Virus record (IMG/VR): IMGVR_UViG_3300021962_000021
Coordinates: 62,001-126,000 of that record
Length of the DNA: 64,000 nucleotides
Reading direction: 5' to 3' (one strand)
Below the pieces are notes generated by a model. That model made no database searches. It was given only the letters and a program-made list of their open reading frames with translations, and was not told where the DNA came from. Below are positions 1,133-62,150 of the stretch, piece by piece. Each line of letters starts with the position of its first letter. Positions within the stretch are counted from its first letter, which is position 1. The translations under genes were made by a program, and so were the position numbers.

Positions 1133-1205
1133 GGCGGATTGGCCGAGGGAAGTGAGGTGAAGCTCTGCAAAAGCTTTTAGGTAGGTTTGAATCCTACATC
1201 CGCCT
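1133..1205 (+). tRNA. tRNA-Cys(GCA)
   Basis: Acceptor GGCGGAT/ATCCGCC, anticodon arm AAGCT-CTGCAAA-AGCTT, T arm GTAGG-TTTGAAT-CCTAC. Confidence 0.85.
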
Positions 1206-1214
1206 CAACTATAT

Positions 1215-1283
1215 TGTGGGAAGGTTAGGTAACCCGTTTGGTCTCATAAGCCAGATATTCAGGTTCGATTCCTGGTCCCGCAA
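1215..1283 (+). tRNA. tRNA-Met(CAT), compact D arm
   Basis: Acceptor TGTGGGA/TCCCGCA, loop CTCATAA, T arm CAGG-TTCGATT-CCTG. Confidence 0.75.
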
Positions 1284-1289
1284 CAACAT

Positions 1290-1364
1290 GGTGGCCGTAG
1301 CCTAATGGTAGGGCGAAAGTTTGTGGCACTTTATGTAAGAGTTCGATTCTCTTCGGTCACACCA
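1290..1364 (+). tRNA. tRNA-His(GTG) with G-1 and encoded CCA
   Basis: G+GTGGCCG/CGGTCAC-A-CCA, AAAGT-TTGTGGC-ACTTT. Confidence 0.9.
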
Positions 1365-1423
1365 CCCCGGGTTTTGGAGCTGGTATCTCTTTTTCCCGAT
1401 ATAAATGAAAAAACTACCAAAAA

Positions 1424-1507
1424 GGAAAGATGGGTGAGTGGTTTAAACCAGCAGTTTACTAAACTGCCGATTCAAAAGGTCCGTGAGTTCGAATCTCACT
1501 CTTTCCG
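1424..1507 (+). tRNA. tRNA-Ser(ACT)
   Basis: GGAAAGA/TCTTTCC-G, GCAGT-TTACTAA-ACTGC, long variable arm. Confidence 0.85.
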
Positions 1508-1508
1508 C

Positions 1509-1649
1509 ATGAAAAATGATAAATTTGAAACTAACAAAAGAGTAAATCGTATTGTTAGAATAAGAAAAATTATTAGAGAAAATGGAGCTTGTTTAATATG
1601 TGTGAGAAGATGGAATGGTGGAGTGAAAAAATATAGAACAAACTGTTAA
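1509..1649 (+). CDS. small basic hypothetical protein (46 aa, CxxC)
   Basis: ATG just after tRNA-Ser; this is the 3' part of track ORF 1305..1649. Confidence 0.45.
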   Translation: MKNDKFETNKRVNRIVRIRKIIRENGACLICVRRWNGGVKKYRTNC

Positions 1650-1652
1650 AAT

Positions 1653-1726
1653 GCCCGTATGGCGTAATTGGCAACCGCACTGGTCTTAGAAACCAGTTTG
1701 TGAAAGTTCGAGTCTTTCTACGGGTA
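1653..1726 (+). tRNA. tRNA-Leu(TAG), short variable loop
   Basis: GCCCGTA/TACGGGT-A, CTGGT-CTTAGAA-ACCAG, GAAAG-TTCGAGT-CTTTC. Confidence 0.85.
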
Positions 1727-1755
1727 CAAAAAATAAATTATCAATATGTAATATT

Positions 1756-2211
1756 ATGGAATACAAACGGCTATATGATGGAGTAAAAATTGACATGATT
1801 GAATATGTCAGAGAGTATTTAAGTGGAAAAGAAAATGTAGAAATACTAATTGGTTGTGATTCACAAAACTTTTCCGATAAAACTATTTACGCAATCGTTG
1901 TAGCTTTGTATCATAAAGGTAAAGGAGCACATGTTCTTTATAGTAAATGGAAAACCCAAAGAGAACCAACACGTTCAGTAAGATTGTTGAGTGAAGTATG
2001 GTATGCGGTTGAAGTTGCTGAAAAAATGAGAGAAGCTGGTTTACCAAAAGTGAAATGGATTGATATTGATATTAACCCTGACCCAAAATACAAATCAAAT
2101 GAAGTGTTCAGACAAGCAGTTGGTTTAGTAGAAGGAATGGGATATGAAGTTAGATATAAAACACTTGGTCCAATCGCAACTTATGCGGCTGACCATTTAG
2201 TTAAATTATAA
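1756..2211 (+). CDS. RNase H-like YkuK (DUF458) family protein
   Basis: IGCDSQ...RLLSEV...IDIDINP...YKSN...AADH pattern. Confidence 0.8.
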   Translation: MEYKRLYDGVKIDMIEYVREYLSGKENVEILIGCDSQNFSDKTIYAIVVALYHKGKGAHVLYSKWKTQREPTRSVRLLSEVWYAVEVAEKMREAGLPKVKWIDIDINPDPKYKSNEVFRQAVGLVEGMGYEVRYKTLGPIATYAADHLVKL

Positions 2212-2216
2212 AATGT

Positions 2217-2248
2217 TTTGGTAGATTAGATATATTTTCGTATATTTA
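2217..2248 (+). promoter_or_regulatory. Bacteroidetes-type sigma70 promoter for the tRNA array
   Basis: TTTG-N20-TATATTTA. Confidence 0.7.
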
Positions 2249-2263
2249 ATTTATCAAACAAAC

Positions 2264-2335
2264 GCTCGGTTGGACTAGGGGTTAGGTCACATCCCTTTCA
2301 CGGATGTAGCACGGGTTCGAATCCCGTACCGAGTA
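2264..2335 (+). tRNA. tRNA-Glu(TTC)
   Basis: GCTCGGT/ACCGAGT, CATCC-CTTTCAC-GGATG, GGTTCGAATCC. Confidence 0.9.
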
Positions 2336-2338
2336 CAA

Positions 2339-2423
2339 GACATACATCACACTCAGTCAAGCCGTATTTCGCTGTTAGTGTATGTTAGATAAGAGAATGA
2401 GGCGGCTGGGACGTTCTCTTATC
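2339..2423 (+). ncRNA. putative two-hairpin kissing-loop RNA
   Basis: Stems GACATACA/TGTATGTT and GATAAGAGAA/TTCTCTTATC; loops AGCCGT and GCGGCT are complementary. Confidence 0.45.
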
Positions 2424-2430
2424 GCAAATT

Positions 2431-2503
2431 GCCTGGTTAGCTCAGCTGGTAGAGCAACTGATTTGTAATCAGTAGGTCGGAGGTTCGATTCCATCACTAG
2501 GCT
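2431..2503 (+). tRNA. tRNA-Thr(TGT)
   Basis: Canonical cloverleaf, ACTGA-TTTGTAA-TCAGT. Confidence 0.92.
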
Positions 2504-2509
2504 CAAAAA

Positions 2510-2583
2510 GGATTGGTAGTTCAGTTGGTTAGAATGCTGCCCTGTCACGGCAGAGGTCGCGGGTTCGAATCCCGTCCAATCCG
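2510..2583 (+). tRNA. tRNA-Asp(GTC)
   Basis: CTGCC-CTGTCAC-GGCAG, canonical arms. Confidence 0.93.
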
Positions 2584-2587
2584 CAAT

Positions 2588-2661
2588 GGTTCGGTAGCTC
2601 AGTTGGATAGAGCAACAGCCTTCTAAGCTGTGGGTCAAAGGTTCGAATCCTTTCCGAATCA
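2588..2661 (+). tRNA. tRNA-Arg(TCT)
   Basis: ACAGC-CTTCTAA-GCTGT. Confidence 0.93.
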
Positions 2662-2667
2662 CAAACT

Positions 2668-2754
2668 GCCCTGGTGGCGAAATTGGTAGACGCGCAAGAC
2701 TTAAAATCTTGTTCACCGTAAATGTGAGTGCCGGTTCGATTCCGGCCTGGGGCA
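2668..2754 (+). tRNA. tRNA-Leu(TAA)
   Basis: CAAGA-CTTAAAA-TCTTG, long variable arm. Confidence 0.92.
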
Positions 2755-2756
2755 CA

Positions 2757-2860
2757 ATGTAACGATTCGTAAGAATGGCTGGACGGACGCTATGTATGAA
2801 GAAAACGTAACACTACGATAAAGGTAGTGAAAAGACAGTTTAACAGCACAGCCGTTACAT
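2757..2860 (+). ncRNA. putative multi-stem ncRNA between tRNAs
   Basis: Closing stem ATGTAACG/CGTTACAT; inner stems GGCTG/CAGCC, ATTC/GAAT, CACTAC/GTAGTG. Confidence 0.5.
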
Positions 2861-2863
2861 AAT

Positions 2864-2937
2864 GGGGGGTTAGCTCAGTTGGCTAGAGCACCTGCTTTGC
2901 ACGCAGGGGGTCATCGGTTCGACTCCGATATCCTCCA
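2864..2937 (+). tRNA. tRNA-Ala(TGC)
   Basis: G3:U70 pair, CCTGC-TTTGCAC-GCAGG. Confidence 0.93.
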
Positions 2938-2942
2938 CATAT

Positions 2943-3052
2943 GCCGGAGTGGCGGAAAGAATGTGGCCACATTTGAGACGTCCCGTAATTCTAGAAAGGT
3001 GCAGTATTAGCCGAAATGGCCTGCGTGTGAGTAACCAATCTCTCCTCCGGCA
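2943..3052 (+). ncRNA. aberrant tRNA-Leu-like RNA
   Basis: Acceptor GCCGGAG/CTCCGGC-A, TGGCGGAA...AGACG D arm with an inserted hairpin, degenerate anticodon and T arms. Confidence 0.55.
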
Positions 3053-3061
3053 CCTTTATTT

Positions 3062-3135
3062 GGACCTATAGCTCAGTTGGTTAGAGCAGGGCACTCATAA
3101 TGCCAAGGTCACAGGTTCGAGTCCTGTTTGGTCCA
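3062..3135 (+). tRNA. tRNA-Ile2/Met(CAT), probably lysidine-type Ile2
   Basis: GGACCTATAGCTCAGTTGGTTAGAGC, loop CTCATAA, A73. Confidence 0.85.
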
Positions 3136-3140
3136 CACTT

Positions 3141-3213
3141 GCGGAAGTAGCTCATTCGGTAGAGCACAACCTTGCCAAGGTTGGGGTGGCCAGTTCGAGC
3201 CTGGTCTTCCGCT
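3141..3213 (+). tRNA. tRNA-Gly(GCC)
   Basis: GCGGAAG/CTTCCGC-T, CAACC-TTGCCAA-GGTTG. Confidence 0.93.
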
Positions 3214-3218
3214 CAAAA

Positions 3219-3267
3219 GGACTTAAATGGTTGATGTACACAACTGAAGTAGGTTAGTCCCACCTAC
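3219..3267 (+). ncRNA. putative small pseudoknot RNA
   Basis: GGACT/AGTCC crossed by GTAGGT/ACCTAC; inner hairpin GGTTG/CAACT. Confidence 0.4.
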
Positions 3268-3272
3268 AAATT

Positions 3273-3347
3273 GCGGGAATAGTATAACGGTTATTATGCC
3301 ATCCTTCCAAGTTGGATATGCCGGTTCGATTCCGGCTTCCCGCTCCA
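3273..3347 (+). tRNA. tRNA-Gly(TCC) with encoded CCA
   Basis: GCGGGAA/TTCCCGC-T-CCA, loop CTTCCAA. Confidence 0.9.
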
Positions 3348-3352
3348 CAAAT

Positions 3353-3423
3353 TGCCCTTTGGTGTAACGGTAGCACAATTGGTTTTGGTCCAATTAGTTT
3401 AGGTTCGAATCCTAAAGGGGCAT
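3353..3423 (+). tRNA. tRNA-Gln(TTG)
   Basis: TGCCCTT/AGGGGCA, ATTGG-TTTTGGT-CCAAT. Confidence 0.9.
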
Positions 3424-3441
3424 CATACTAAAATTGGAAAA

Positions 3442-4095
3442 ATGAAATTAACATTAAATAAAGGACAGCGGTTGTGGTTTACAAGTGACACGCATTACAA
3501 CCATGCTAACATTTGTTCCGCTACAACTAGATGGATAGAACCGGTGACTTGTAGAGAGTTTAAATCATTAGAACATATGAACGCAACATTAGTAGGTAAT
3601 ATCAATGAGTTTGTAGGACAAGATGATATTCTATTCCATTTGGGAGATTGGTCATTTGGTGGATTTGAACAAATTGAGATATTCAGAAATCAAATCGTAT
3701 GTAAGAATGTTCACATCATCACAGGTAATCACGATCATCACATTGAAAACGATAGAGAAGGTTGTCAATCACTTTTTAGTTCAGTAAACAAATACCTAAA
3801 CTTAAATGTGAAATGGTCAAATGGACACGCTGGAAATGATGAACAACGATTTGCTCTAATGCACTTTCCAATCGCAAGTTGGGATAATATGGCAAGAGGT
3901 GCGATTCATTTACACGGACATGTTCATTTTCCGCCGGCAACTAGAATTGGTTTGGGTAAGATGATGGATGTAGGATGTGATGGTAACGCATTGTATCCAA
4001 TTGAAATGAGGACTGTATTAAGTTTGATGAGAAACCAACCAATTAAAAGTATGTTCAGTTTTGACCATCACGAAATTGTAGAAAATTATAAGTAA
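3442..4095 (+). CDS. calcineurin-like metallophosphoesterase
   Basis: SDTH, HLGD, GNHD, HGHVH. Confidence 0.9.
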   Translation: MKLTLNKGQRLWFTSDTHYNHANICSATTRWIEPVTCREFKSLEHMNATLVGNINEFVGQDDILFHLGDWSFGGFEQIEIFRNQIVCKNVHIITGNHDHHIENDREGCQSLFSSVNKYLNLNVKWSNGHAGNDEQRFALMHFPIASWDNMARGAIHLHGHVHFPPATRIGLGKMMDVGCDGNALYPIEMRTVLSLMRNQPIKSMFSFDHHEIVENYK

Positions 4096-4478
4096 TGAAA
4101 GAGTTAATATTATTGAGAGGGTTACCAGGTAGTGGTAAAAGTTCATTGGCAAAATCATTTGGTGGAATGCATATTGAGGCTGATATGTTCTTTATGAAAG
4201 ATGGAGAATATAAGTTTGATGCTACTAAATTAAGATACGCACATGAATGGTGCCAAAATGTAGTTGAAGCTTGGATGGATGAGGGTGAAGAACTAATTGT
4301 AGTATCAAACACATTTACTCAAGAATGGGAAATGGATTATTACTATACATTGGCTAAGGAAGCGGGTTATATAGTTCATTCAGTTATTGTAGAGAATAGG
4401 CATGGTTCTAAAAATATACACAATGTACCTGAAGAGAAATTAGAACAAATGAAAAATAGATTTGAAGTAAAGTTATAA
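4095..4478 (+). CDS. P-loop kinase (AAA_33 / polynucleotide kinase-like)
   Basis: RGLPGSGKS, VSNTF, HNVP. Confidence 0.85.
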   Translation: MKELILLRGLPGSGKSSLAKSFGGMHIEADMFFMKDGEYKFDATKLRYAHEWCQNVVEAWMDEGEELIVVSNTFTQEWEMDYYYTLAKEAGYIVHSVIVENRHGSKNIHNVPEEKLEQMKNRFEVKL

Positions 4479-4479
4479 T

Positions 4480-5607
4480 ATGGAAAACTTAAATTCAGTT
4501 TGCTACATAGCAACAATAAATGAGATTAAACCAATCGAAGGTGCTGATAATATTGAATTAGCAGTTGTTGGTGGGTGGAATTGTATTACCAAAAAAGGAG
4601 AACAAAAGGTTGGTGATTTAGTAATGATTGCTACAACCGATGCTATTATTCCTTTAGAACTTTCAGAAAAGATGAGTGTTACTAATTACTTACGAAAAGG
4701 TGGTAGAGTTAGGACGGTGAAATTAAGAGGTGTATACTCGGAATGTTTGATTATTCCAATTACTTATATTCCTTTTATGGAAAATTACTATGAGGGTAAG
4801 GATATGATGTATGTAATGAATATTTACAAATATGAACCACCTGTTAAGACCGTTCAATTAGCAAGTGGTAGAAAGATTCGTTATCAAGACAATCCGAATT
4901 TCCACATTTACTATAAGTTCCCTAACTTAAAGAATGTACCTGGAATGTTTACCGAAGAGGACACAGTCGAAATCACTCGTAAGATTCACGGAACTAATGC
5001 TCGTTATGGTATTGTTAAGAAAAACAAATTATCATTGTGGGATAAAGTGAAGAAATTCTTTGGAGTGGCAGATAGATGGATTGATTACGAATTTGTGGTT
5101 GGCTCTCACAATGTGGAAAAAGGAAGTGAATCACAAGGTTTCTACGATACTAATGTTTGGTATGATATTGAAAAGAAATATGATATTAAAAAGAAGTTGT
5201 GGGAGTATGTGAAATTGTTCAGCCCTACTAACATAGGCGATGGTATTACCTTATATGGTGAGATTTACGGAGCTGGAATTCAAAAGGGATATGATTATGG
5301 ATTGAAAGAGATTGAGTTCGTAGGATTCGATGTAAAAGAGAATGGTGAGTATTTAGATACAATCAATTCAAAGTTACTTATCAAAGAACTTCTAAAGTTA
5401 CCATATGTTGAACAATTGTATTTTGGTGAATGGTCGCAAGATGTGCAAGACAAATACACATTCAATAATTTTATCAAAGGAACGAAAATACCTGAAGAAG
5501 GAATTGTGATTAAAATTCATACGGGGGAAAGACAAAAGGTAGCTAAAGTTATCAACCCAGATTATCTAATTTATAGTGAAAAGCATAATGTAGGTGATAG
5601 TCACTAA
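4480..5607 (+). CDS. RNA ligase (DRB0094/Rnl5-like)
   Basis: N-terminal IEGADNIELA OB-like region; KIHGTN (motif I), GEIYG, GFDV, EGIVIK, AKVIN. Confidence 0.88.
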   Translation: MENLNSVCYIATINEIKPIEGADNIELAVVGGWNCITKKGEQKVGDLVMIATTDAIIPLELSEKMSVTNYLRKGGRVRTVKLRGVYSECLIIPITYIPFMENYYEGKDMMYVMNIYKYEPPVKTVQLASGRKIRYQDNPNFHIYYKFPNLKNVPGMFTEEDTVEITRKIHGTNARYGIVKKNKLSLWDKVKKFFGVADRWIDYEFVVGSHNVEKGSESQGFYDTNVWYDIEKKYDIKKKLWEYVKLFSPTNIGDGITLYGEIYGAGIQKGYDYGLKEIEFVGFDVKENGEYLDTINSKLLIKELLKLPYVEQLYFGEWSQDVQDKYTFNNFIKGTKIPEEGIVIKIHTGERQKVAKVINPDYLIYSEKHNVGDSH

Positions 5608-5614
5608 AAATAAA

Positions 5615-5646
5615 TTTGGAAGTTTGAAAAAACTTTCTTATATTTA
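5615..5646 (+). promoter_or_regulatory. Bacteroidetes-type promoter
   Basis: TTTG-N20-TATATTTA. Confidence 0.65.
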
Positions 5647-5672
5647 CATAGTTAAAATTTAAAACATAAACA

Positions 5673-6101
5673 ATGAATGTAAAACAAGCGTTAAAACAAA
5701 AAAACAAATTGGTTACCGATTTGAAAGCTCAATATGAGATTTTGAAAAAGTATAACTCAATTGAAGAAGGAAACCCACGTAGATATTCAATGTCCGTTAC
5801 ATTGACGGTAATTGAAACAATTCAATTTGAGTTAGTTGAATTGAAAGCAAAAATCCATAAAGCAAACCAACCGGTATATGCTAAAATATTTGAATTAGCA
5901 GAGTTGAAAGGATTGGTAAAGGAATTAAAAAAAGTTCCAACCGAAGAAGGTAAAATAGCTGAAAGATACGGAAGCGTTATTTCAGTAAAAGAAGTGGAAT
6001 TGAATGTGGTGGATATTCAAAACAAAGTGGATGCGTTAAGTGAAAGAATTGAAGAGTTGCAAAACGAATTAGATATTCACAACGCAAACACACAAATCTA
6101 A
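5673..6101 (+). CDS. coiled-coil protein, DIP1984-like
   Basis: MNVKQALKQKNKL...LKAKIHKAN...IEELQNELDIHNANTQI. Confidence 0.65.
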   Translation: MNVKQALKQKNKLVTDLKAQYEILKKYNSIEEGNPRRYSMSVTLTVIETIQFELVELKAKIHKANQPVYAKIFELAELKGLVKELKKVPTEEGKIAERYGSVISVKEVELNVVDIQNKVDALSERIEELQNELDIHNANTQI

Positions 6102-6106
6102 AAATA

Positions 6107-6310
6107 TTGAGTGAGTGGGGTTTGAAACTGATTGATTAGTTTATTCTTACAATTCTACTATGATACCAAATAGCGGATGAACGAATAAGATAATGAATAA
6201 TTAACAAACTTCAACAATATTAGGGTCACTTGTCGCGTAATTTCAAAACACTCAAACCTCTTTGAAACTCGGATAACCTTTTTAATTGGATTCATTCCTC
6301 ACAAACTCAA
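6107..6310 (+). ncRNA. putative ~200-nt structured RNA downstream of the DIP1984-like gene
   Basis: Ends pair (TTGAGT..GTGGGG..TGAA / TTCA..CCTCAC..ACTCAA); inner pair TTATTC/GAATAA; no ORF. Confidence 0.5.
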
Positions 6311-6337
6311 ATTATTAAAAAATTAAAAACAAATGTT

Positions 6338-6607
6338 ATGGGTTTTGGAACTTATTATTTACTTTGCTTTGTTTATTGCATTTATCAATTGATAAAAAAA
6401 TGGAATAAAAATGTAATGGCCGGTGGTTTAGGTATAACACCTGGATTGGACTCTATAATGATTATTATTATGGCTCCAATATTAGCACCAATTGATATAT
6501 TTTTAACATGGATGCGATTGTATAAAGAAGCAGAAGAAGCAAGAAGAAAACACGCTGATACTGATAATAGTTTAGACGGTAAAAGCAGAGATGAAAAAGT
6601 ATTCTAA
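6338..6607 (+). CDS. small membrane protein
   Basis: Two hydrophobic segments. Confidence 0.7.
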   Translation: MGFGTYYLLCFVYCIYQLIKKWNKNVMAGGLGITPGLDSIMIIIMAPILAPIDIFLTWMRLYKEAEEARRKHADTDNSLDGKSRDEKVF

Positions 6608-6614
6608 TTATTAA

Positions 6615-6699
6615 GGAGAGATGGCAGAGTGGTTGAATGCACCGGTCTTGAAAACCGGCAACTGTAACAGGTTCTGGGGTTCGAATCCCTGTCTCTCCG
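6615..6699 (+). tRNA. tRNA-Ser(TGA)
   Basis: GGAGAGA/TCTCTCC-G, CCGGT-CTTGAAA-ACCGG, long variable arm. Confidence 0.93.
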
Positions 6700-6704
6700 C
6701 ACAT

Positions 6705-6861
6705 TGTAAGGTGGTGAAATTGTGCACACATCGGCAGACACACCCACTCGTCTCGTGGGCGCTGAATATGAAATAGGTAAATGAATATGGGTTGACCACA
6801 AAGCCGGCTATTTTGTTCTTTACTGAATCACAGCATGAAGGTTCGATTCCTTCCCTTACAG
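6705..6861 (+). ncRNA. large tRNA-like RNA (157 nt)
   Basis: Acceptor TGTAAGG/CCTTACA, perfect T arm GAAGG-TTCGATT-CCTTC, CCCAC-TCGTCTC-GTGGG arm, ~75-nt variable region. Confidence 0.65.
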
Positions 6862-6862
6862 C

Positions 6863-6909
6863 AAAACCTCAATTACTTTTGGTAATTTGAGGTTTTTTTA
6901 TTATATTTA
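6863..6909 (+). terminator. intrinsic terminator overlapping the next promoter (TTTG 6878, TATATTTA 6902)
   Basis: AAAACCTCAATTAC/GTAATTTGAGGTTTT hairpin plus U tract. Confidence 0.65.
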
Positions 6910-6914
6910 AAATT

Positions 6915-7208
6915 ATGAAAAAGATACCTTACAAAACACATGATATTTTAATTTGTGATTGCCATTCAACTGAACATCAAATGGTTATTTGTTATAGTGA
7001 AGATGAAATGCCATCTGGACAAAAATGTCCAATTGTATATGCTCATGTTCATTTAAATAAAAGACCTTTTTGGCAAAGATTAAAGTATGGTATTAAATAC
7101 ATATTTGGATATAAATGTATGTATGGTGCATTTGATGAATTTTTAGTAAGTCCAAAAGATGCAGACAAGATAAAAGATATTGTAAAATATTTAAAAAAAA
7201 TAAAATGA
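6915..7208 (+). CDS. hypothetical protein
   Basis: ORF after promoter. Confidence 0.7.
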   Translation: MKKIPYKTHDILICDCHSTEHQMVICYSEDEMPSGQKCPIVYAHVHLNKRPFWQRLKYGIKYIFGYKCMYGAFDEFLVSPKDADKIKDIVKYLKKIK

Positions 7209-7969
7209 AATTTAGAATAACACACATTAGCGATACACATAATAAACACAAACAACTAAATGGTAAATTGCCAGGAGGAGATTTGTTAATCCATAGTGGA
7301 GATATTACATCTATTGGTAGAAAGCACGAAATTGAAGAATTTATCAAATGGTTCAATGGAATAGAAGGATATACTACTAAAGTTTTTATTGCAGGTAATC
7401 ACGATATGACCTTTGATAAAGAAGTTCTAATGAGAAGAAAATTAGATTATTTTGATGGTGGTAGAAACAATTGGGATACTCCTTGTGCAGAAGGTAAGCC
7501 TGAATGGTTGATTACTTTATTAGAAACAGGACTTAATTCTAATGTATTTTATTTGGAAAATTCTTTTATAGAAATAGACCAAATAAAAATATGGGGTTCA
7601 CCATACTCAGCAACTTTTGGTTATGGTTGGGGATTCAATGTGGATAGAGGACATGATTCTGCACAATTGTGGAATACTATACCCGAAGATACTGATATTG
7701 TAATTACTCACGGACCTGTTTATGGATATGGTGATAGAACAGCAAATACAAATGAAAATGTAGGTTGTGCGGATTTATATCATAGATTGAATGAATTAAA
7801 AACTCCTTTACATTTTACAGGACACATTCATGAGGGATATGGATATAAGCAAACTACTTGGGGTGGTTACTCCTTTAACGGATGTACTTGTAATTTAAGG
7901 TATGAAGCTTTAAATTCACCTATTACTTTTGATTATGATTTTATTAGTAAAGAATTAAATTTTCTTTAA
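7205..7969 (+). CDS. metallophosphoesterase (MPPED/239FB-like)
   Basis: ISDTH, HSGD, AGNHD, THGP, GHIHE. Confidence 0.9.
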   Translation: MKFRITHISDTHNKHKQLNGKLPGGDLLIHSGDITSIGRKHEIEEFIKWFNGIEGYTTKVFIAGNHDMTFDKEVLMRRKLDYFDGGRNNWDTPCAEGKPEWLITLLETGLNSNVFYLENSFIEIDQIKIWGSPYSATFGYGWGFNVDRGHDSAQLWNTIPEDTDIVITHGPVYGYGDRTANTNENVGCADLYHRLNELKTPLHFTGHIHEGYGYKQTTWGGYSFNGCTCNLRYEALNSPITFDYDFISKELNFL

Positions 7970-8814
7970 TGAGAGATACTATAATTTTTGCAGGTCAATC
8001 TAACACTTTTGGTTTGGGATTAGAGTGGGAACTCGATCCCGAACTGAATAGTGATGAATACCTTAATAAAGGTGTTCACTTACCTTTACCTGTAGAAACA
8101 AGACGTCCATATGAAAAATTATATTGGAAAAAATATAGATGGGCTAGTTTGGTTTGTAAGGATTTAGGATATACTGAATTTAATGTACATGATTTTGAAA
8201 ACAAACCTGTTTTAGGTAGTGGTGCAGCCGAAACTTTATGGCATTTATTCGAAAGAAGAAATGAAACCGATATCAAACAATTGATTGATAAAACAAAATA
8301 TGTAGTTTTAGAAATTGGATACATTCGTTGGTGGGATGATAATTTACATGGAAAATTAAATGGTGAATATCTACCGAACACACCAATAGAAATTGAAAAT
8401 TATTTAAAATTAAAAGATGCAAATCAGTTGGTAGTAGAGGCTGCAATTAGATGGATTTCCAATTATGATGAAAAATCATTTTGGGAACAAACATTTACAA
8501 AAATAGTTAAATTTCAGGAGTTGTTTCCCGAAATAAAAGTAATATTAGTTCCTTGGACCGGAAATCAACACGACTTTTTAAAAAGAACCGAATTATATGA
8601 ACAAGTTAAAGATTGGTTTATAGATGTTCCTACTCCCGGTGCAATAAATGGGTTTTTACAAACAAAACAATTACAAATTTGGAATAAAGCAAAGGCGTGG
8701 AATGGTAATTACAAATATAATTACAAAGAAGAGCATGCATGTATTGAAGGGCATAGATTAGTTGCGGATATGTTGATTAAACACATTAAAAATTTAGAAA
8801 ATGAAAAAGAATAA
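7969..8814 (+). CDS. SGNH/GDSL-like hydrolase-fold protein
   Basis: FAGQSNTFG (block I-like), C-terminal EHACIEGHRLVA. Confidence 0.55.
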   Translation: MRDTIIFAGQSNTFGLGLEWELDPELNSDEYLNKGVHLPLPVETRRPYEKLYWKKYRWASLVCKDLGYTEFNVHDFENKPVLGSGAAETLWHLFERRNETDIKQLIDKTKYVVLEIGYIRWWDDNLHGKLNGEYLPNTPIEIENYLKLKDANQLVVEAAIRWISNYDEKSFWEQTFTKIVKFQELFPEIKVILVPWTGNQHDFLKRTELYEQVKDWFIDVPTPGAINGFLQTKQLQIWNKAKAWNGNYKYNYKEEHACIEGHRLVADMLIKHIKNLENEKE

Positions 8815-61508: not shown

Positions 61509-62150
61509 ATGAAAACGCAACAAGAACTAGAAGCAAATTACGAAAAGTTCATTCAAATTCTAAAAAAATATTTCACAGGCGAAAGGTTAGAGAAATTACT
61601 CCACATGTATTCCGAAGATGAATTGGGAAGTAATCTAGCGGTATCACCGGCATCCGGCTCAACATTTTATCACAATGCATACATAGGTGGTTATATTGAC
61701 CATATATTTAATGTAACTAAGAATGCGCTTCGTATGAAGAAGTTATTTGAAGAAGCAGGTGGTAAAATTGATTTTACTGATGAAGAATTAGTATTCAGTT
61801 GTTTACATCACGATTTGGGTAAATTGGGTATTAAAGGTGAATTACACTATATTCCAAACGATAATGATTGGCAGATTAAAAATAACGGACATGTGTTTAA
61901 GAGAAACGATAAGATTTCTTATATGACACTTACCGATAGAACATTTTTTACTCTAAACCATTATGGTATTTCTTATAATGAGAATGAGTATTTTGCTATC
62001 AAACTTACAGATGGTATGTATGATGAAGATAACCAAAAGTATTTAGCCGGTCACGATATTAAAAAACAATTGAAAGGTAAATTACAATTTATTATGCATT
62101 GGGCAGACCACATGTCTACTGTGATTGAAAGACAAGATGTCAAAATTTAA
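61509..62150 (+). CDS. HD-domain phosphohydrolase
   Basis: PAS...HNAYIGGYIDH, LHHDLGK, HWAD. Confidence 0.85.
   Translation: MKTQQELEANYEKFIQILKKYFTGERLEKLLHMYSEDELGSNLAVSPASGSTFYHNAYIGGYIDHIFNVTKNALRMKKLFEEAGGKIDFTDEELVFSCLHHDLGKLGIKGELHYIPNDNDWQIKNNGHVFKRNDKISYMTLTDRTFFTLNHYGISYNENEYFAIKLTDGMYDEDNQKYLAGHDIKKQLKGKLQFIMHWADHMSTVIERQDVKI

Follow-up and report, generated by a model that had tools for sequence, protein, structure and literature searches.

The closest described relatives of the RNA studied here come from several different groups. Bacterial tRNA-Asp(GUC) combines the anticodon GUC with C38, G73, G2-C71 and G1-C72, and its variable loop has only 4-5 nt. The class II tRNAs (Ser/Leu/Tyr) have a long variable arm and a 3-bp D stem, and tRNA-Ser carries G73. 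The allo-tRNAs share this architecture, but their acceptor/T branch is arranged 8/4 or 9/3 (12 bp; 8/5 in tRNA-Sec). They use 35 different anticodons, with GUC among the three predominant ones; they are charged by SerRS and were proposed to be missense suppressors or regulatory RNAs (Mukai et al. 2017, PMC5389517). In the indirect pathway a non-discriminating AspRS charges tRNA-Asn (anticodon GUU, U1-A72, G73) with Asp, which is then amidated by GatCAB. In D. radiodurans and T. thermophilus this pathway serves asparagine biosynthesis, and it was proposed for Bdellovibrio (PMC4206432).

There are also other tRNA-like RNAs. Phage T4 species 1 RNA (rnaC), of unknown function, is a stable RNA of about 140 nt with a T arm and acceptor-like ends; it is the last gene of the phage tRNA cluster. 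Two chromosomal tRNA-like non-coding RNAs act outside decoding. The tRNA-Other of Bacillus cereus is aminoacylated, with lysine (cited in PMC5389517). In the bacterial Y-RNA-like YrlA the 5' and 3' ends form a Ro-binding stem instead of an acceptor stem, and the gene lies next to rsr/rtcB (PMC4201824). Finally, some RNAs dimerize through self-complementary loops, such as the HIV-1 DIS and phi29 pRNA, and ROOL, GOLLD and OLE form homo-oligomers (PMC12286853); ROOL and GOLLD are also phage-associated.

Here we analyzed a 157-nt tRNA-like element in a 64,000-nt stretch of phage DNA (the window; positions 62,001 to 126,000 of IMG/VR record IMGVR_UViG_3300021962_000021). The data show that it is the phage-borne, expanded member of a large family of tRNA(GUC)-like RNAs, which is native to Bacteroidota chromosomes.

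A tRNA-like RNA in the phage window

A preliminary description, made from the sequence alone, had reported intact acceptor and T arms, a D loop with a hairpin, an anticodon loop without U33 and purine 37, a variable domain of about 75 nt closed by GCTG/CAGC, and a terminator behind the element. We found all of these sequence features where they had been described (Table 1). The one correction concerns the D loop. The proposed TGTG/CACA hairpin, TGTGCACA, is a zero-spacer 8-nt palindrome and cannot fold on itself.

Table 1. Features of the element and its surroundings in window coordinates.
Position	Strand	Feature	Observation
2510-2584		Canonical tRNA-Asp (G1-C72, loop CUGUCAC)	Coexists with the element in the window; a canonical tRNA-Asp is also present in relatives
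6615-6700	+	tRNA-Ser(UGA), 4 nt upstream, probably co-transcribed with the element	ARAGORN; Rfam RF00005 at 57 bits; same tRNA-Ser/element pair in loci L004, L006, L011 and L016
6705-6861	+	Whole tRNA-like RNA, U1 to discriminator G73 (157 nt)	Covariance model 135.6 bits, E 3e-33, model positions 1-149; only copy in the 238-kb phage record
6705-6711	+	Acceptor stem 5' strand, UGUAAGG (U1, G2, U3 ...)	Pairs with 6854-6860; compensatory changes in six of seven pairs; U1-A72 in 62/63 phage copies, G2-C71 in 63/63
6712-6742	+	U8 and G9; 3-bp D stem GUG/CAC (6714-6716 with 6739-6741); 22-nt D loop with G18G19 at 6733-6734; position 26 at 6742	Pairs 10-25 and 11-24 covary (AU, GC, UA, CG); U8, G9, A14, A15 and GG invariant in alignment A2
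6721-6728	+	D-loop insertion, perfect palindrome UGUGCACA	54 of 127 phage copies have a D-loop insertion; 52% of these hold a perfect palindrome of 6 nt or more, against 18% of shuffles
6743-6759	+	Anticodon arm, stem CCCAC/GUGGG and loop UCGUCUC (C33; G34 U35 C36 at 6750-6752; U37; C38)	Stem covaries
6760-6836	+	Variable domain, 77 nt	Closed by GCUG/CAGC
6761-6771	+	5' strands of P1 (GCUG) and P1b (UGA), with bulge AAUA between them	P1 pairs with 6831-6834, P1b with 6828-6830; both covary
6776-6787	+	P2 5' strand, GGUAAA(U)GAAUA	Pairs with 6814-6824; compensatory changes in five of seven modelled pairs; ends in the conserved AUA/UGU
6789-6799	+	Conserved GGGUUGACCAC in the apical region of the variable domain	Near-invariant in long-armed members from phages and bacteria
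6802-6809	+	Variable-arm tip, perfect palindrome AGCCGGCU	92% of 122 phage copies have a palindrome of 6 nt or more here, against 22% of shuffles; zero spacer in 111 of 122; self-duplex energy -14.9 kcal/mol
6814-6834	+	3' strands of P2 (6814-6824), internal loop GAA (6825-6827), P1b (6828-6830) and P1 (6831-6834)	Covariation, as for the 5' strands
6837-6853	+	T arm, GAAGG-UUCGAUU-CCUUC	Four of five pairs covary; T-loop nucleotides invariant
6854-6862	+	Acceptor 3' strand CCUUACA, G73 (6861), C74 (6862); CCA not encoded	G73 and C74 in 79 of 79 phage copies; all 16 ordinary tRNAs of the window also carry C74 followed by an A-rich tail
6863-6899	+	Intrinsic terminator, hairpin plus U7	-13.7 kcal/mol, z -4.8; missed by a generic terminator scan

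Taken alone, the sequence does not fold better than expected by chance (MFE z-score -0.64). ARAGORN gave no tRNA or tmRNA call for the element, and a search with Rfam 15, its tRNA model included, gave no hit to 6705-6861 and no relevant hit in the window at E of 10 or less. A tmRNA is also not compatible with the structure: tmRNAs have a tRNA-like domain without an anticodon arm, G3-U70, pseudoknots and a tag reading frame, while the present RNA has an anticodon arm, a U3-A70 pair and a length of only 157 nt. We considered whether the string GUGAUGA...CUGA could be a K-turn or box C/D motif, but dropped this reading because these nucleotides are positions 7-13 of a covarying D arm.

The family in phages and Bacteroidota

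Next we searched for relatives. Pattern scans hit at least 119 viral stretches each. Of the loci from the second scan, 25 were chance matches in coding DNA and were discarded. In total 157 viral loci were confirmed by nhmmer, with 132 unique sequences. In contrast, blastn against the cultured phages in INPHARED found only T-arm matches or nothing. A covariance model built from 63 relatives recovered the window copy over exactly 6705-6861, while ordinary tRNAs scored 20-59 bits.

Covariation among homologs had been named beforehand as a test of the element, and it is decisive. In the alignment 97.8% of the cells are paired against 42-56% in slid controls, 24 of 34 pairs show compensatory double changes, and none of 500 shuffles was as good. 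These changes occur in all seven helices, across phages and three bacterial orders. The tertiary-core nucleotides (U8, A14, A15, G18G19, the T loop UUCGAUU, U48) are kept. The reading of the RNA body as a decaying pseudo-tRNA, which could draw only on the weak single-sequence fold, is refuted by these data.

The same RNA occurs in bacterial chromosomes. At least 120 genome contigs matched, and all those listed are from Bacteroidota. The RNA was found in 14/40 Chitinophagales, 27/40 Cytophagales and 33/40 Sphingobacteriales, and in some Flavobacteriales, with 1-5 copies per genome. A sensitive re-search of five RNA-negative genomes found only ordinary class II tRNAs. Six bacterial loci gave no Rfam hit at E of 0.01 or less. 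Full-text literature searches found no description of the family, although DNAVirus_1850, a tRNA-Asp-overlapping candidate in a catalogue of viral structured RNAs, could not be compared and is outside this statement.

The common fold is a class-II-like tRNA with a 7-bp acceptor, a 3-bp D stem, a 5-bp anticodon stem with a 7-nt loop, a T arm with a canonical UUCRANY loop and a variable arm of 20-110 nt. The acceptor/T arrangement is 7/5, which differs from that of the allo-tRNAs; the anticodon is nearly fixed, and the arm is far longer than in class II tRNAs and allo-tRNAs, is branched by bulges and carries conserved motifs. The distribution is Bacteroidota plus phages. T4 rnaC shows no detectable homology. 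It scored 14.6 bits with the covariance model, from the T arm only and below the ordinary T4 tRNAs, and its predicted fold differs. It has no anticodon arm of this kind and no known bacterial counterpart. A comparison with T4 rnaD also gave no homology. Neither tRNA-Other nor YrlA has the combination of GUC, U1-A72 and a long arm, or an AsnC neighbor.

A column-pair scan found no pairing partner for GGGUUGACCAC; here conserved columns swamp the signal. A contact between GGCAGAC in the D loop and GUCUC in the anticodon loop, as a pseudoknot or between molecules, was also rejected. Its apparent invariance was forced by the first scan pattern, and independent sampling showed the D loops GGCAAA, GGCAUA, GGAAUA and GGUAUA.

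Conserved anticodon and acceptor nucleotides

The anticodon loop has the form NN-GUC-Y-C. GUC occurs in 127/127 phage copies and in 102/107 bacterial copies sampled with the covariance model; the rare variants are CUC, AUC and UUC. U35, C36 and C38 are present in 107/107 bacterial copies. G73 is present in 47/48 and U1-A72 in 48/48 bacterial copies. Position 37 is a pyrimidine in about 99% of phage and 94% of bacterial copies. The missing U33, in contrast, is a trait of this phage subgroup only: U33 is present in about 64% of phage and about 91% of bacterial copies, and position 33 is C in the window copy and in 34% of phage copies. Pyrimidine 37 is the family-wide anomaly.

According to published rules the Asp identity set is G73, G34, U35, C36 and C38 plus G2-C71; U1-A72 promotes amidation by GatCAB, while G1-C72 and U20a block it (PMC9976931, PMC1635274). 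The family conserves this Asp set, but it has U1-A72 in place of the G1-C72 of bacterial tRNA-Asp, and its D loop is enlarged.

The possibility that the RNA is an ordinary tRNA-Asp isoacceptor, which merely tolerates insertions in the variable and D loops, deserves consideration. ARAGORN calls the 10 short members (90-95 nt), and only these, tRNA-Asp(gtc). The tertiary core is intact, the commonest loop CUGUCUC differs from CUGUCAC at position 37 only, and one normal-size phage tRNA-Asp (locus L019) also has U37. However, a canonical tRNA-Asp coexists in the window and in relatives. U1-A72, Y37 and a long arm with conserved motifs are all conserved and are lacking in genuine tRNA-Asp, and the bacterial RNA has a dedicated regulator. 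We consider this explanation unlikely.

It is also unlikely, although somewhat less so, that the RNA is an allo-tRNA-like missense decoder. In this view SerRS would charge it through the long arm and G73 without reading the anticodon, and Ser would be inserted at GAY (or GAR) codons. The class II architecture (3-bp D stem, 11-nt D loop, long arm, G73, G2-C71) and the GUC anticodon of many allo-tRNAs agree with this. The shifts at position 34 to C, A or U stay within the GAN box, and U33 is present in most bacterial copies. On the other hand, SerRS does not need the near-invariant U35, C36, Y37 and C38. The RNA has U1-A72 and U3-A70, where bacterial tRNA-Ser has G1-C72 and A3-U70. The arm is interrupted by bulges and can reach 110 nt. 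Phylum-wide Asp-to-Ser mistranslation under an amino-acid regulator has no known precedent.

An AsnC-family neighbor in bacteria

We then examined the gene neighborhood. In bacteria an AsnC-family regulator lies within 1.5 kb, always on the opposite strand and divergent from the RNA gene, in 64 of 78 loci found with the covariance model and in 85 of 118 loci found by pattern. Close orthologues of this regulator occur only in RNA-positive genomes, plus one other. The regulator is often the first gene before sufB, so its effector need not be asparagine. A search for GAGAC target sites for the anticodon loop in the asnC-like leader found none (1 in 14 kb). The 238-kb phage itself has no AsnC, no class IIb synthetase and no asparagine synthase.

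GatB was found in all 14 RNA-positive genomes of the sample, AsnRS in 5 of 5 and GlnRS in 4 of 5 of those tested. A simple model in which the RNA replaces asparagine synthetase is not supported: AsnB-type synthase is present in 12 of 14 RNA-positive genomes against 81 of 151 overall, and AsnA is rare (4 of 151). The idea that the RNA is the reason for which GatCAB is retained is also not supported. GatB is present in 126 of 151 genomes, about 110 of them RNA-negative, while the RNA is present in only about 16.

The phage copies lie in tRNA clusters next to RNA ligase and phosphoesterase repair genes. This context, the very large number of phages involved and the resemblance of the anticodon loop to that of tRNA-Asp could suggest an uncharged decoy. 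Such a decoy would soak up a factor which targets GUN tRNAs, such as an anticodon nuclease, a colicin-E5-like toxin, Tgt or a stringent-response sensor; phages would carry it as a counter-defence, and a dimeric form would add avidity. However, the family is primarily chromosomal with its own amino-acid-type regulator. The acceptor end (U1-A72, G2-C71, G73, C74) is as conserved as the anticodon loop, which a pure anticodon decoy would not need, and no defence gene is a conserved neighbor. We consider this reading unlikely.

A possible role in Asp/Asn aminoacyl-tRNA metabolism

The comparative data establish the family, its class-II-shaped L-fold, its home in Bacteroidota chromosomes and its repeated capture by phages; we put the confidence in a real structured tRNA-like RNA family at about 0.95. 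In contrast, expression, processing, charging, amidation, regulation and dimerization are inferred from sequence and gene context alone.

The RNA in the window is presumably transcribed with the tRNA cluster and ends at its own terminator. It is probably trimmed by the tRNA-processing enzymes and completed to CCA; the evidence is position -1 (U in 43/79) and the same C74 plus A-rich trailer as in the genuine tRNAs. Since the family keeps the aspartate identity set, host AspRS most likely binds and aspartylates it. With U1-A72, a pyrimidine at position 37 and a bulky arm it probably works outside normal decoding, as a carrier, sensor or competitor in Asp/Asn (acidic/amide) aminoacyl-tRNA metabolism. 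In bacteria its transcription is probably set by the divergent AsnC-family regulator, while the phage would bring its own constitutive copy. The probability that this mechanism, namely recognition by AspRS of an RNA that is not an ordinary decoder, is correct is only about 0.4. Position 34 is not invariant, and G34 is a strong AspRS determinant. Class II synthetases approach from the variable-loop side, so a 75-nt arm may hinder AspRS. The large D loop could act as a GatCAB antideterminant, as U20a does, and the frequent U33 in bacteria means that decoding is not excluded.

The interpretation in the preliminary description, a non-decoding tRNA mimic acting as nuclease decoy, synthetase or T-box ligand, or scaffold, is thus supported in part. 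The RNA has a genuine tRNA fold, and of the options offered a synthetase ligand fits best. A non-decoding role is plausible as an inference, but nothing supports a T-box ligand. The bacterial origin, the AsnC link, U1-A72 and the phage-specific palindromes were not visible in that description.

A more speculative and rather unlikely version is that the family is a dedicated, non-translating tRNA cofactor. A discriminating AspRS could charge it, since the anticodon is GUC and not the GUU of tRNA-Asn; in the rare YUC variants GluRS may do so. GatCAB would then amidate it because of U1-A72, although translational use of such a product would miscode. This would give Bacteroidota that already have AsnRS and GlnRS an RNA-borne Asp-to-Asn (or Glu-to-Gln) route or signal, switched by the AsnC-type regulator. 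The constitutive phage version would self-assemble into dimers or chains through its palindromic loops and capture this pathway, or the dimeric AspRS, during infection.

If confirmed, this is one of the most widespread uncatalogued tRNA-like RNAs, near-core in Sphingobacteriales and Cytophagales and carried by hundreds of environmental phages. It joins features that normally belong to different tRNAs, namely the Asp identity set, the amidotransferase determinant and a class-II arm, and comes with a dedicated amino-acid-type transcription factor. This makes the long-standing question of what non-decoding or alternative-identity tRNAs do in bacteria directly testable. In practice, tRNA annotation of Bacteroidota and their phages misses these genes or labels the short ones as tRNA-Asp.

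Palindromic loops in the phage copies

Zero-spacer perfect palindromes at the variable-arm tip distinguish the phage copies from the bacterial ones (92% against 11%), and palindromes are often also present in the D loop. Like the dimerizing loops mentioned above they are GC-rich sequences, here of 6-12 nt, exposed at helix tips, but on a tRNA scaffold. This implies, from sequence only, that the phage RNA can dimerize through one or two self-complementary loops, and it offers a natural, comparative test case for RNA homodimerization on such a scaffold. Alternatively the palindromes could be DNA-level elements, such as protein or restriction sites, without RNA function; GCCGGC is over-represented in the window (9 against 0.8 expected). 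We consider this very unlikely, because the palindromes sit only at the two structure-tolerant tips and more than 40 different sequences are used.

Sequence features of the element

The window is part of a 238-kb IMG/VR jumbo-phage record. Its tRNA genes are interleaved with an Rnl1-type RNA ligase and two metallophosphoesterases, an arrangement which looks like a tRNA-repair module. The element under study begins four nucleotides after a tRNA-Ser(UGA). A preliminary description, made from the sequence alone, had reported a tRNA-like RNA with intact acceptor and T arms, an unusual anticodon loop and a very large variable domain as the last element before a terminator. This observation is confirmed, since all of these features were found in the sequence. 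The T arm is perfect and has the loop TTCGATT; the anticodon-like hairpin is CCCAC/TCGTCTC/GTGGG. A 77-nt insert, which is closed by GCTG/CAGC, lies between the anticodon and T stems. On its own, however, the sequence is not statistically special. The fold has a z-score of -0.64, and neither ARAGORN nor Rfam 15 reports the element, even at E of 10 or less.

Features discussed in the text. Locations without a prefix refer to the window; the prefix L denotes a locus retrieved in the searches (L412, L477, L479 and L486 are bacterial), and G139:C1 a genome contig.
Feature	Location	Strand	Details
15 tRNA genes	1133-3424
Weak tRNA-Met(CAT) call	1215-1284		29.9 bits, just above the Rfam cut-off
tRNA-Ser with anticodon ACT	1424-1508		A34
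Canonical tRNA-Asp	2510-2584		G1-C72
Second tRNA-like candidate	2942-3047	+	between tRNA-Ala and tRNA-Met
Region resembling a tRNA-repair module	3442-8000
Metallophosphoesterase	3442-4095
Rnl1-type RNA ligase	4480-5607		phrog_968
tRNA-Ser(UGA)	6615-6700
Acceptor stem of the element	6705-6711 with 6854-6860		7 bp
Terminator	6863-6899		hairpin plus U7
Metallophosphoesterase	7205-7969
D-loop palindromes similar to that of the second candidate	L035:11063-11176; L014:8106-8212
Another family of expanded tRNA-like RNAs	L017:772-905; L030:154-281 and 5859-5983; L043:11050-11215; L044:1886-1990; L046:5291-5415; L058:11701-11807		related jumbo phages
Normal-size phage tRNA-Asp(GUC)	L019:6642-6717		loop CUGUCUA, encoded CCA
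Bacterial family members with shifted anticodons	L412 (G139:C1:3852069-3852399); L477; L479; L486		UUC (two tandem copies), CUC and AUC

A large family in viral contigs

Loci fetched through the neighbouring RNA ligase gave four homologues, all again just after tRNA-Ser(UGA). A pattern from the conserved core hit at least 119 viral stretches. A second, independent pattern, which was anchored only in the variable arm and T arm, hit at least 119 more; of the 74 new loci 48 held covariance-model matches and 25 were chance matches in coding DNA. In all, 157 viral loci and 132 unique sequences carry the element.

Next we analyzed the structure on an alignment of 63 sequences, for which RNAalifold predicts seven helices. 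With two added invariant pairs, 97.8% of cells form standard pairs, against 42-56% when the partners are slid by 1-3 columns. Changes on both sides are seen in 24 of 34 pairs, and the alignment contains 369 compensatory cells against 18-57 in the slid controls. None of 500 shuffles reaches the observed values. A covariance model of the family (R1) scores its members at 77-152 bits and ordinary tRNAs at 20-59 bits. The phage genome holds one copy.

Structure of the RNA

The body is a class-II-like tRNA. It has U1-A72 (62/63), G2-C71 (63/63) and U3-A70 (59/63), followed by U8 and G9, a 3-bp covarying D stem closed by an invariant G-C, a D loop with A14, A15 and G18G19, a 5-bp anticodon stem, U48 and a T loop UUCGANY. 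The discriminator G73, followed by C74, is present in 79 of 79 copies. The 3' trailer (C74, then A-rich) is the same as that of all 16 genuine tRNAs in the window, and the base at -1 is mostly U; this argues for the same processing.

The variable arm consists of P1 (4 bp), a 5' bulge, P1b (3 bp), an internal loop, and P2, which ends in a conserved AUA/UGU. P1, P1b and P2 all covary. The apical region of the arm carries the near-invariant GGGUUGACCAC. Arm length ranges from about 20 nt to about 110 nt; the short forms total 90-95 nt and are called tRNA-Asp(gtc) by ARAGORN.

The anticodon loop

In 127 unique phage copies the loops were CUGUCUC (65), UCGUCUC (36), UUGUCUC (16), CCGUCUC (4), UCGUCUA (3) and one each of CAGUCAC, UGGUCUC and UAGUCUC. 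In the pattern-independent phage subset every copy has GUC. Among 107 bacterial copies found by the model alone the anticodon was GUC in 102, CUC in 3 and AUC in 2. In these 107 copies U35, C36 and C38 are invariant; position 37 is U in 83, C in 18 and G in 6, and U33 is present in 97. One further genome has two tandem UUC copies. All of these shifted anticodons still fall within the GAN codon box.

The commonest loop therefore differs from the tRNA-Asp loop CUGUCAC at position 37 only. A canonical tRNA-Asp with G1-C72 coexists with the element in the window and in related phages. A normal-size phage tRNA-Asp(GUC) in one viral locus (L019) also has U37; pyrimidine-37 is therefore not confined to the long-armed family.

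Occurrence in Bacteroidota and association with an AsnC-family regulator

The core pattern also hit at least 120 bacterial genome contigs. All those listed are Bacteroidota, including isolates of Chitinophaga, Pedobacter, Algoriphagus, Cyclobacterium and Spirosoma. With R1 the RNA was found in 14 of 40 sampled genomes of the order of Chitinophaga (genome G001), in 27 of 40 of the order of Algoriphagus (G003) and in 33 of 40 of the order of Pedobacter (G004), in the latter usually as two tandem copies. Across the whole phylum it was found in only about 16 of 151 genomes. The genes are rarely near tRNA genes (5 of 120 loci) and end in terminators.

A 156-aa AsnC-family regulator lies about 150 nt upstream on the opposite strand. 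Its domains are PF13404 and PF01037, and its best NCBIfam match is AsnC at 157 bits, which is below the cut-off of 227. This arrangement holds in 85 of 118 pattern-found loci and in 64 of 78 model-found loci, and it is always divergent. In the 151-genome sample, close orthologues of this regulator (53% identity or more) occur in 16 genomes, of which fifteen hold the RNA. What lies beyond the regulator varies; sufB follows it in 22 loci. The regulator and the RNA are therefore the conserved unit. In bacterial loci such as L409, L412, L415 and L417 the regulator is often immediately followed, in the same direction, by sufB and sufC, and it may therefore also control Fe-S cluster assembly genes. 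The family is not in Rfam 15, and literature searches did not find it.

Aspartate identity elements and the inferred role of the RNA

According to Giegé and Eriani (PMC9976931), aspartate identity rests on G73, G34, U35, C36 and C38, while G2-C71 and G1-C72 are also conserved in bacterial tRNA-Asp. Amidation of Asp-tRNA by GatCAB is conferred by U1-A72 and prevented in tRNA-Asp by G1-C72 and U20a, as was shown experimentally by Bailly et al. (PMC1635274). The family has the full Asp set except that 1-72 is U-A. By published rules, that combination would be aspartylated and then offered to the amidotransferase.

GatB is present in all 14 RNA-positive genomes of the sample; AsnRS was found in 5 of 5 genomes tested and GlnRS in 4 of 5. 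GatCAB therefore has no obligatory substrate there. D. radiodurans and T. thermophilus likewise encode AsnRS, GlnRS and GatCAB, and there the enzyme serves asparagine synthesis (PMC4206432). Together with the AsnC-type neighbour, this makes an Asp/Asn-linked role the leading hypothesis, although it remains inference.

Several results weaken the simple version of this hypothesis. AsnB-type synthase is present in 12 of 14 RNA-positive genomes, against 81 of 151 overall, and AsnA is rare. GatB is equally common in RNA-negative genomes, position 34 is not invariant, and the regulator often heads the suf operon. The enlarged D loop might block GatCAB. Furthermore, U33 is mostly kept in bacteria, so that decoding cannot be excluded. 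Allo-tRNAs offer a precedent for long-armed, SerRS-charged tRNAs in which GUC is a predominant anticodon (PMC5389517). We therefore keep serylation with missense decoding, an uncharged decoy and an ordinary isoacceptor as rival explanations.

Taken together, the analysis shows, far beyond chance, that the element is a member of a new, widespread family of long-armed tRNA(GUC)-like RNAs of Bacteroidota and their phages. Its function, in contrast, is inferred from sequence alone, and this includes expression, charging and amidation; the best-supported mechanism is recognition, and probably charging, by AspRS, with use outside ordinary decoding. The preliminary interpretation, a non-decoding tRNA mimic acting as a nuclease decoy, a synthetase or T-box ligand or a scaffold, is partly supported.

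Palindromes in the phage copies

The tip of the variable arm carries perfect palindromes in most phage copies but in few bacterial ones.

Palindromes at the tip of the variable arm in phage copies, shuffled sequences and bacterial copies.
Measure	Phage copies (n = 122)	Shuffles	Bacterial copies
Perfect palindrome of 6 nt or more	92%	22%	11% (their shuffles 18%)
Perfect palindrome of 8 nt or more	80%	5%	9%
Longest inverted repeat has zero spacer	111 of 122	18.5%

More than 40 different palindromes are used, for example AGCCGGCU, GCUUGCAAGC, GCGCGC, GCUAGCUAGC, GCAUGCAUGC and UUGUGCACAA. In the 10-mers, positions 4 and 7 covary (UU/AA, UA/UA, AU/AU, CG/CG). Those positions would lie inside a 4-nt hairpin loop, so the pairing cannot be intramolecular. 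The median self-duplex energy is -14.9 kcal/mol. A D-loop insertion occurs in 54 of 127 phage copies, and 52% of these hold a palindrome of 6 nt or more, against 18% of shuffles; the one in the window is UGUGCACA.

The simplest reading of these data is homodimerisation of the phage RNA, or chains where two different palindromes are present. A DNA-level symmetric site is the alternative, but it does not explain why the palindromes sit only at the two structure-tolerant tips. Chromosomal copies in Chitinophagaceae (for example loci L282, L286 and L295) carry an extra hairpin capped by GNRA tetraloops (GAAA, GCAA) inside the variable arm, just before the GGGUYGACCAC motif, while the palindromes of the phage copies lie just after it.

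Genomic context in phages and comparison with known RNAs

All neighbours in phages are on the same strand. In one phage group (33 loci) a large terminase and a portal gene follow about 1 kb downstream, while in the group of the window the RNA closes the tRNA region. Metallophosphoesterase, an RNaseH-like protein (PF04308), PhoH and PD-(D/E)XK genes recur nearby. A search of the window's phage found no AsnC, no class IIb synthetase and no asparagine synthase, so it must rely on host factors.

Species 1 RNA of phage T4 is the closest analogue by position and size, but it is not homologous. YrlA, tmRNA, allo-tRNAs and B. cereus tRNA-Other each share part of the logic and fail defining features.

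Other tRNA-like sequences

The second tRNA-like candidate in the window has the acceptor GCCGGAG/CTCCGGC and a D-arm-like start (TGGCGGAAA), which carries a 14-nt perfect palindrome, AATGTGGCCACATT. It has no canonical T loop; ARAGORN, Rfam and R1 do not call it, and its fold z-score is +0.68. Similar D-loop palindromes occur in two other loci. In the related jumbo phages there is another family of expanded tRNA-like RNAs, in which the acceptor (AGTCAGG/CCTGACT, discriminator A), the class-II D arm (GCGGAATTGGTAGACGC) and the T arm (ACAGG-TTCGAAT-CCTGT) are conserved, while the 40-100-nt middle is hypervariable and has no clear anticodon arm.

One tRNA-Ser in the window has anticodon ACT, whereas the orthologous tRNA in related phages has GCT; an A34 tRNA-Ser is unusual for bacteria and phages. 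The weak tRNA-Met(CAT) call starts UGUGGGA with U1-A72 and shares the first three acceptor nucleotides, UGU, with the element. Over the whole window the 4-nt palindromes are strongly avoided (GATC 11 against 171 expected, GTAC 23 against 171, CTAG 35 against 171), while GCCGGC is over-represented, with 9 against 0.8 expected.
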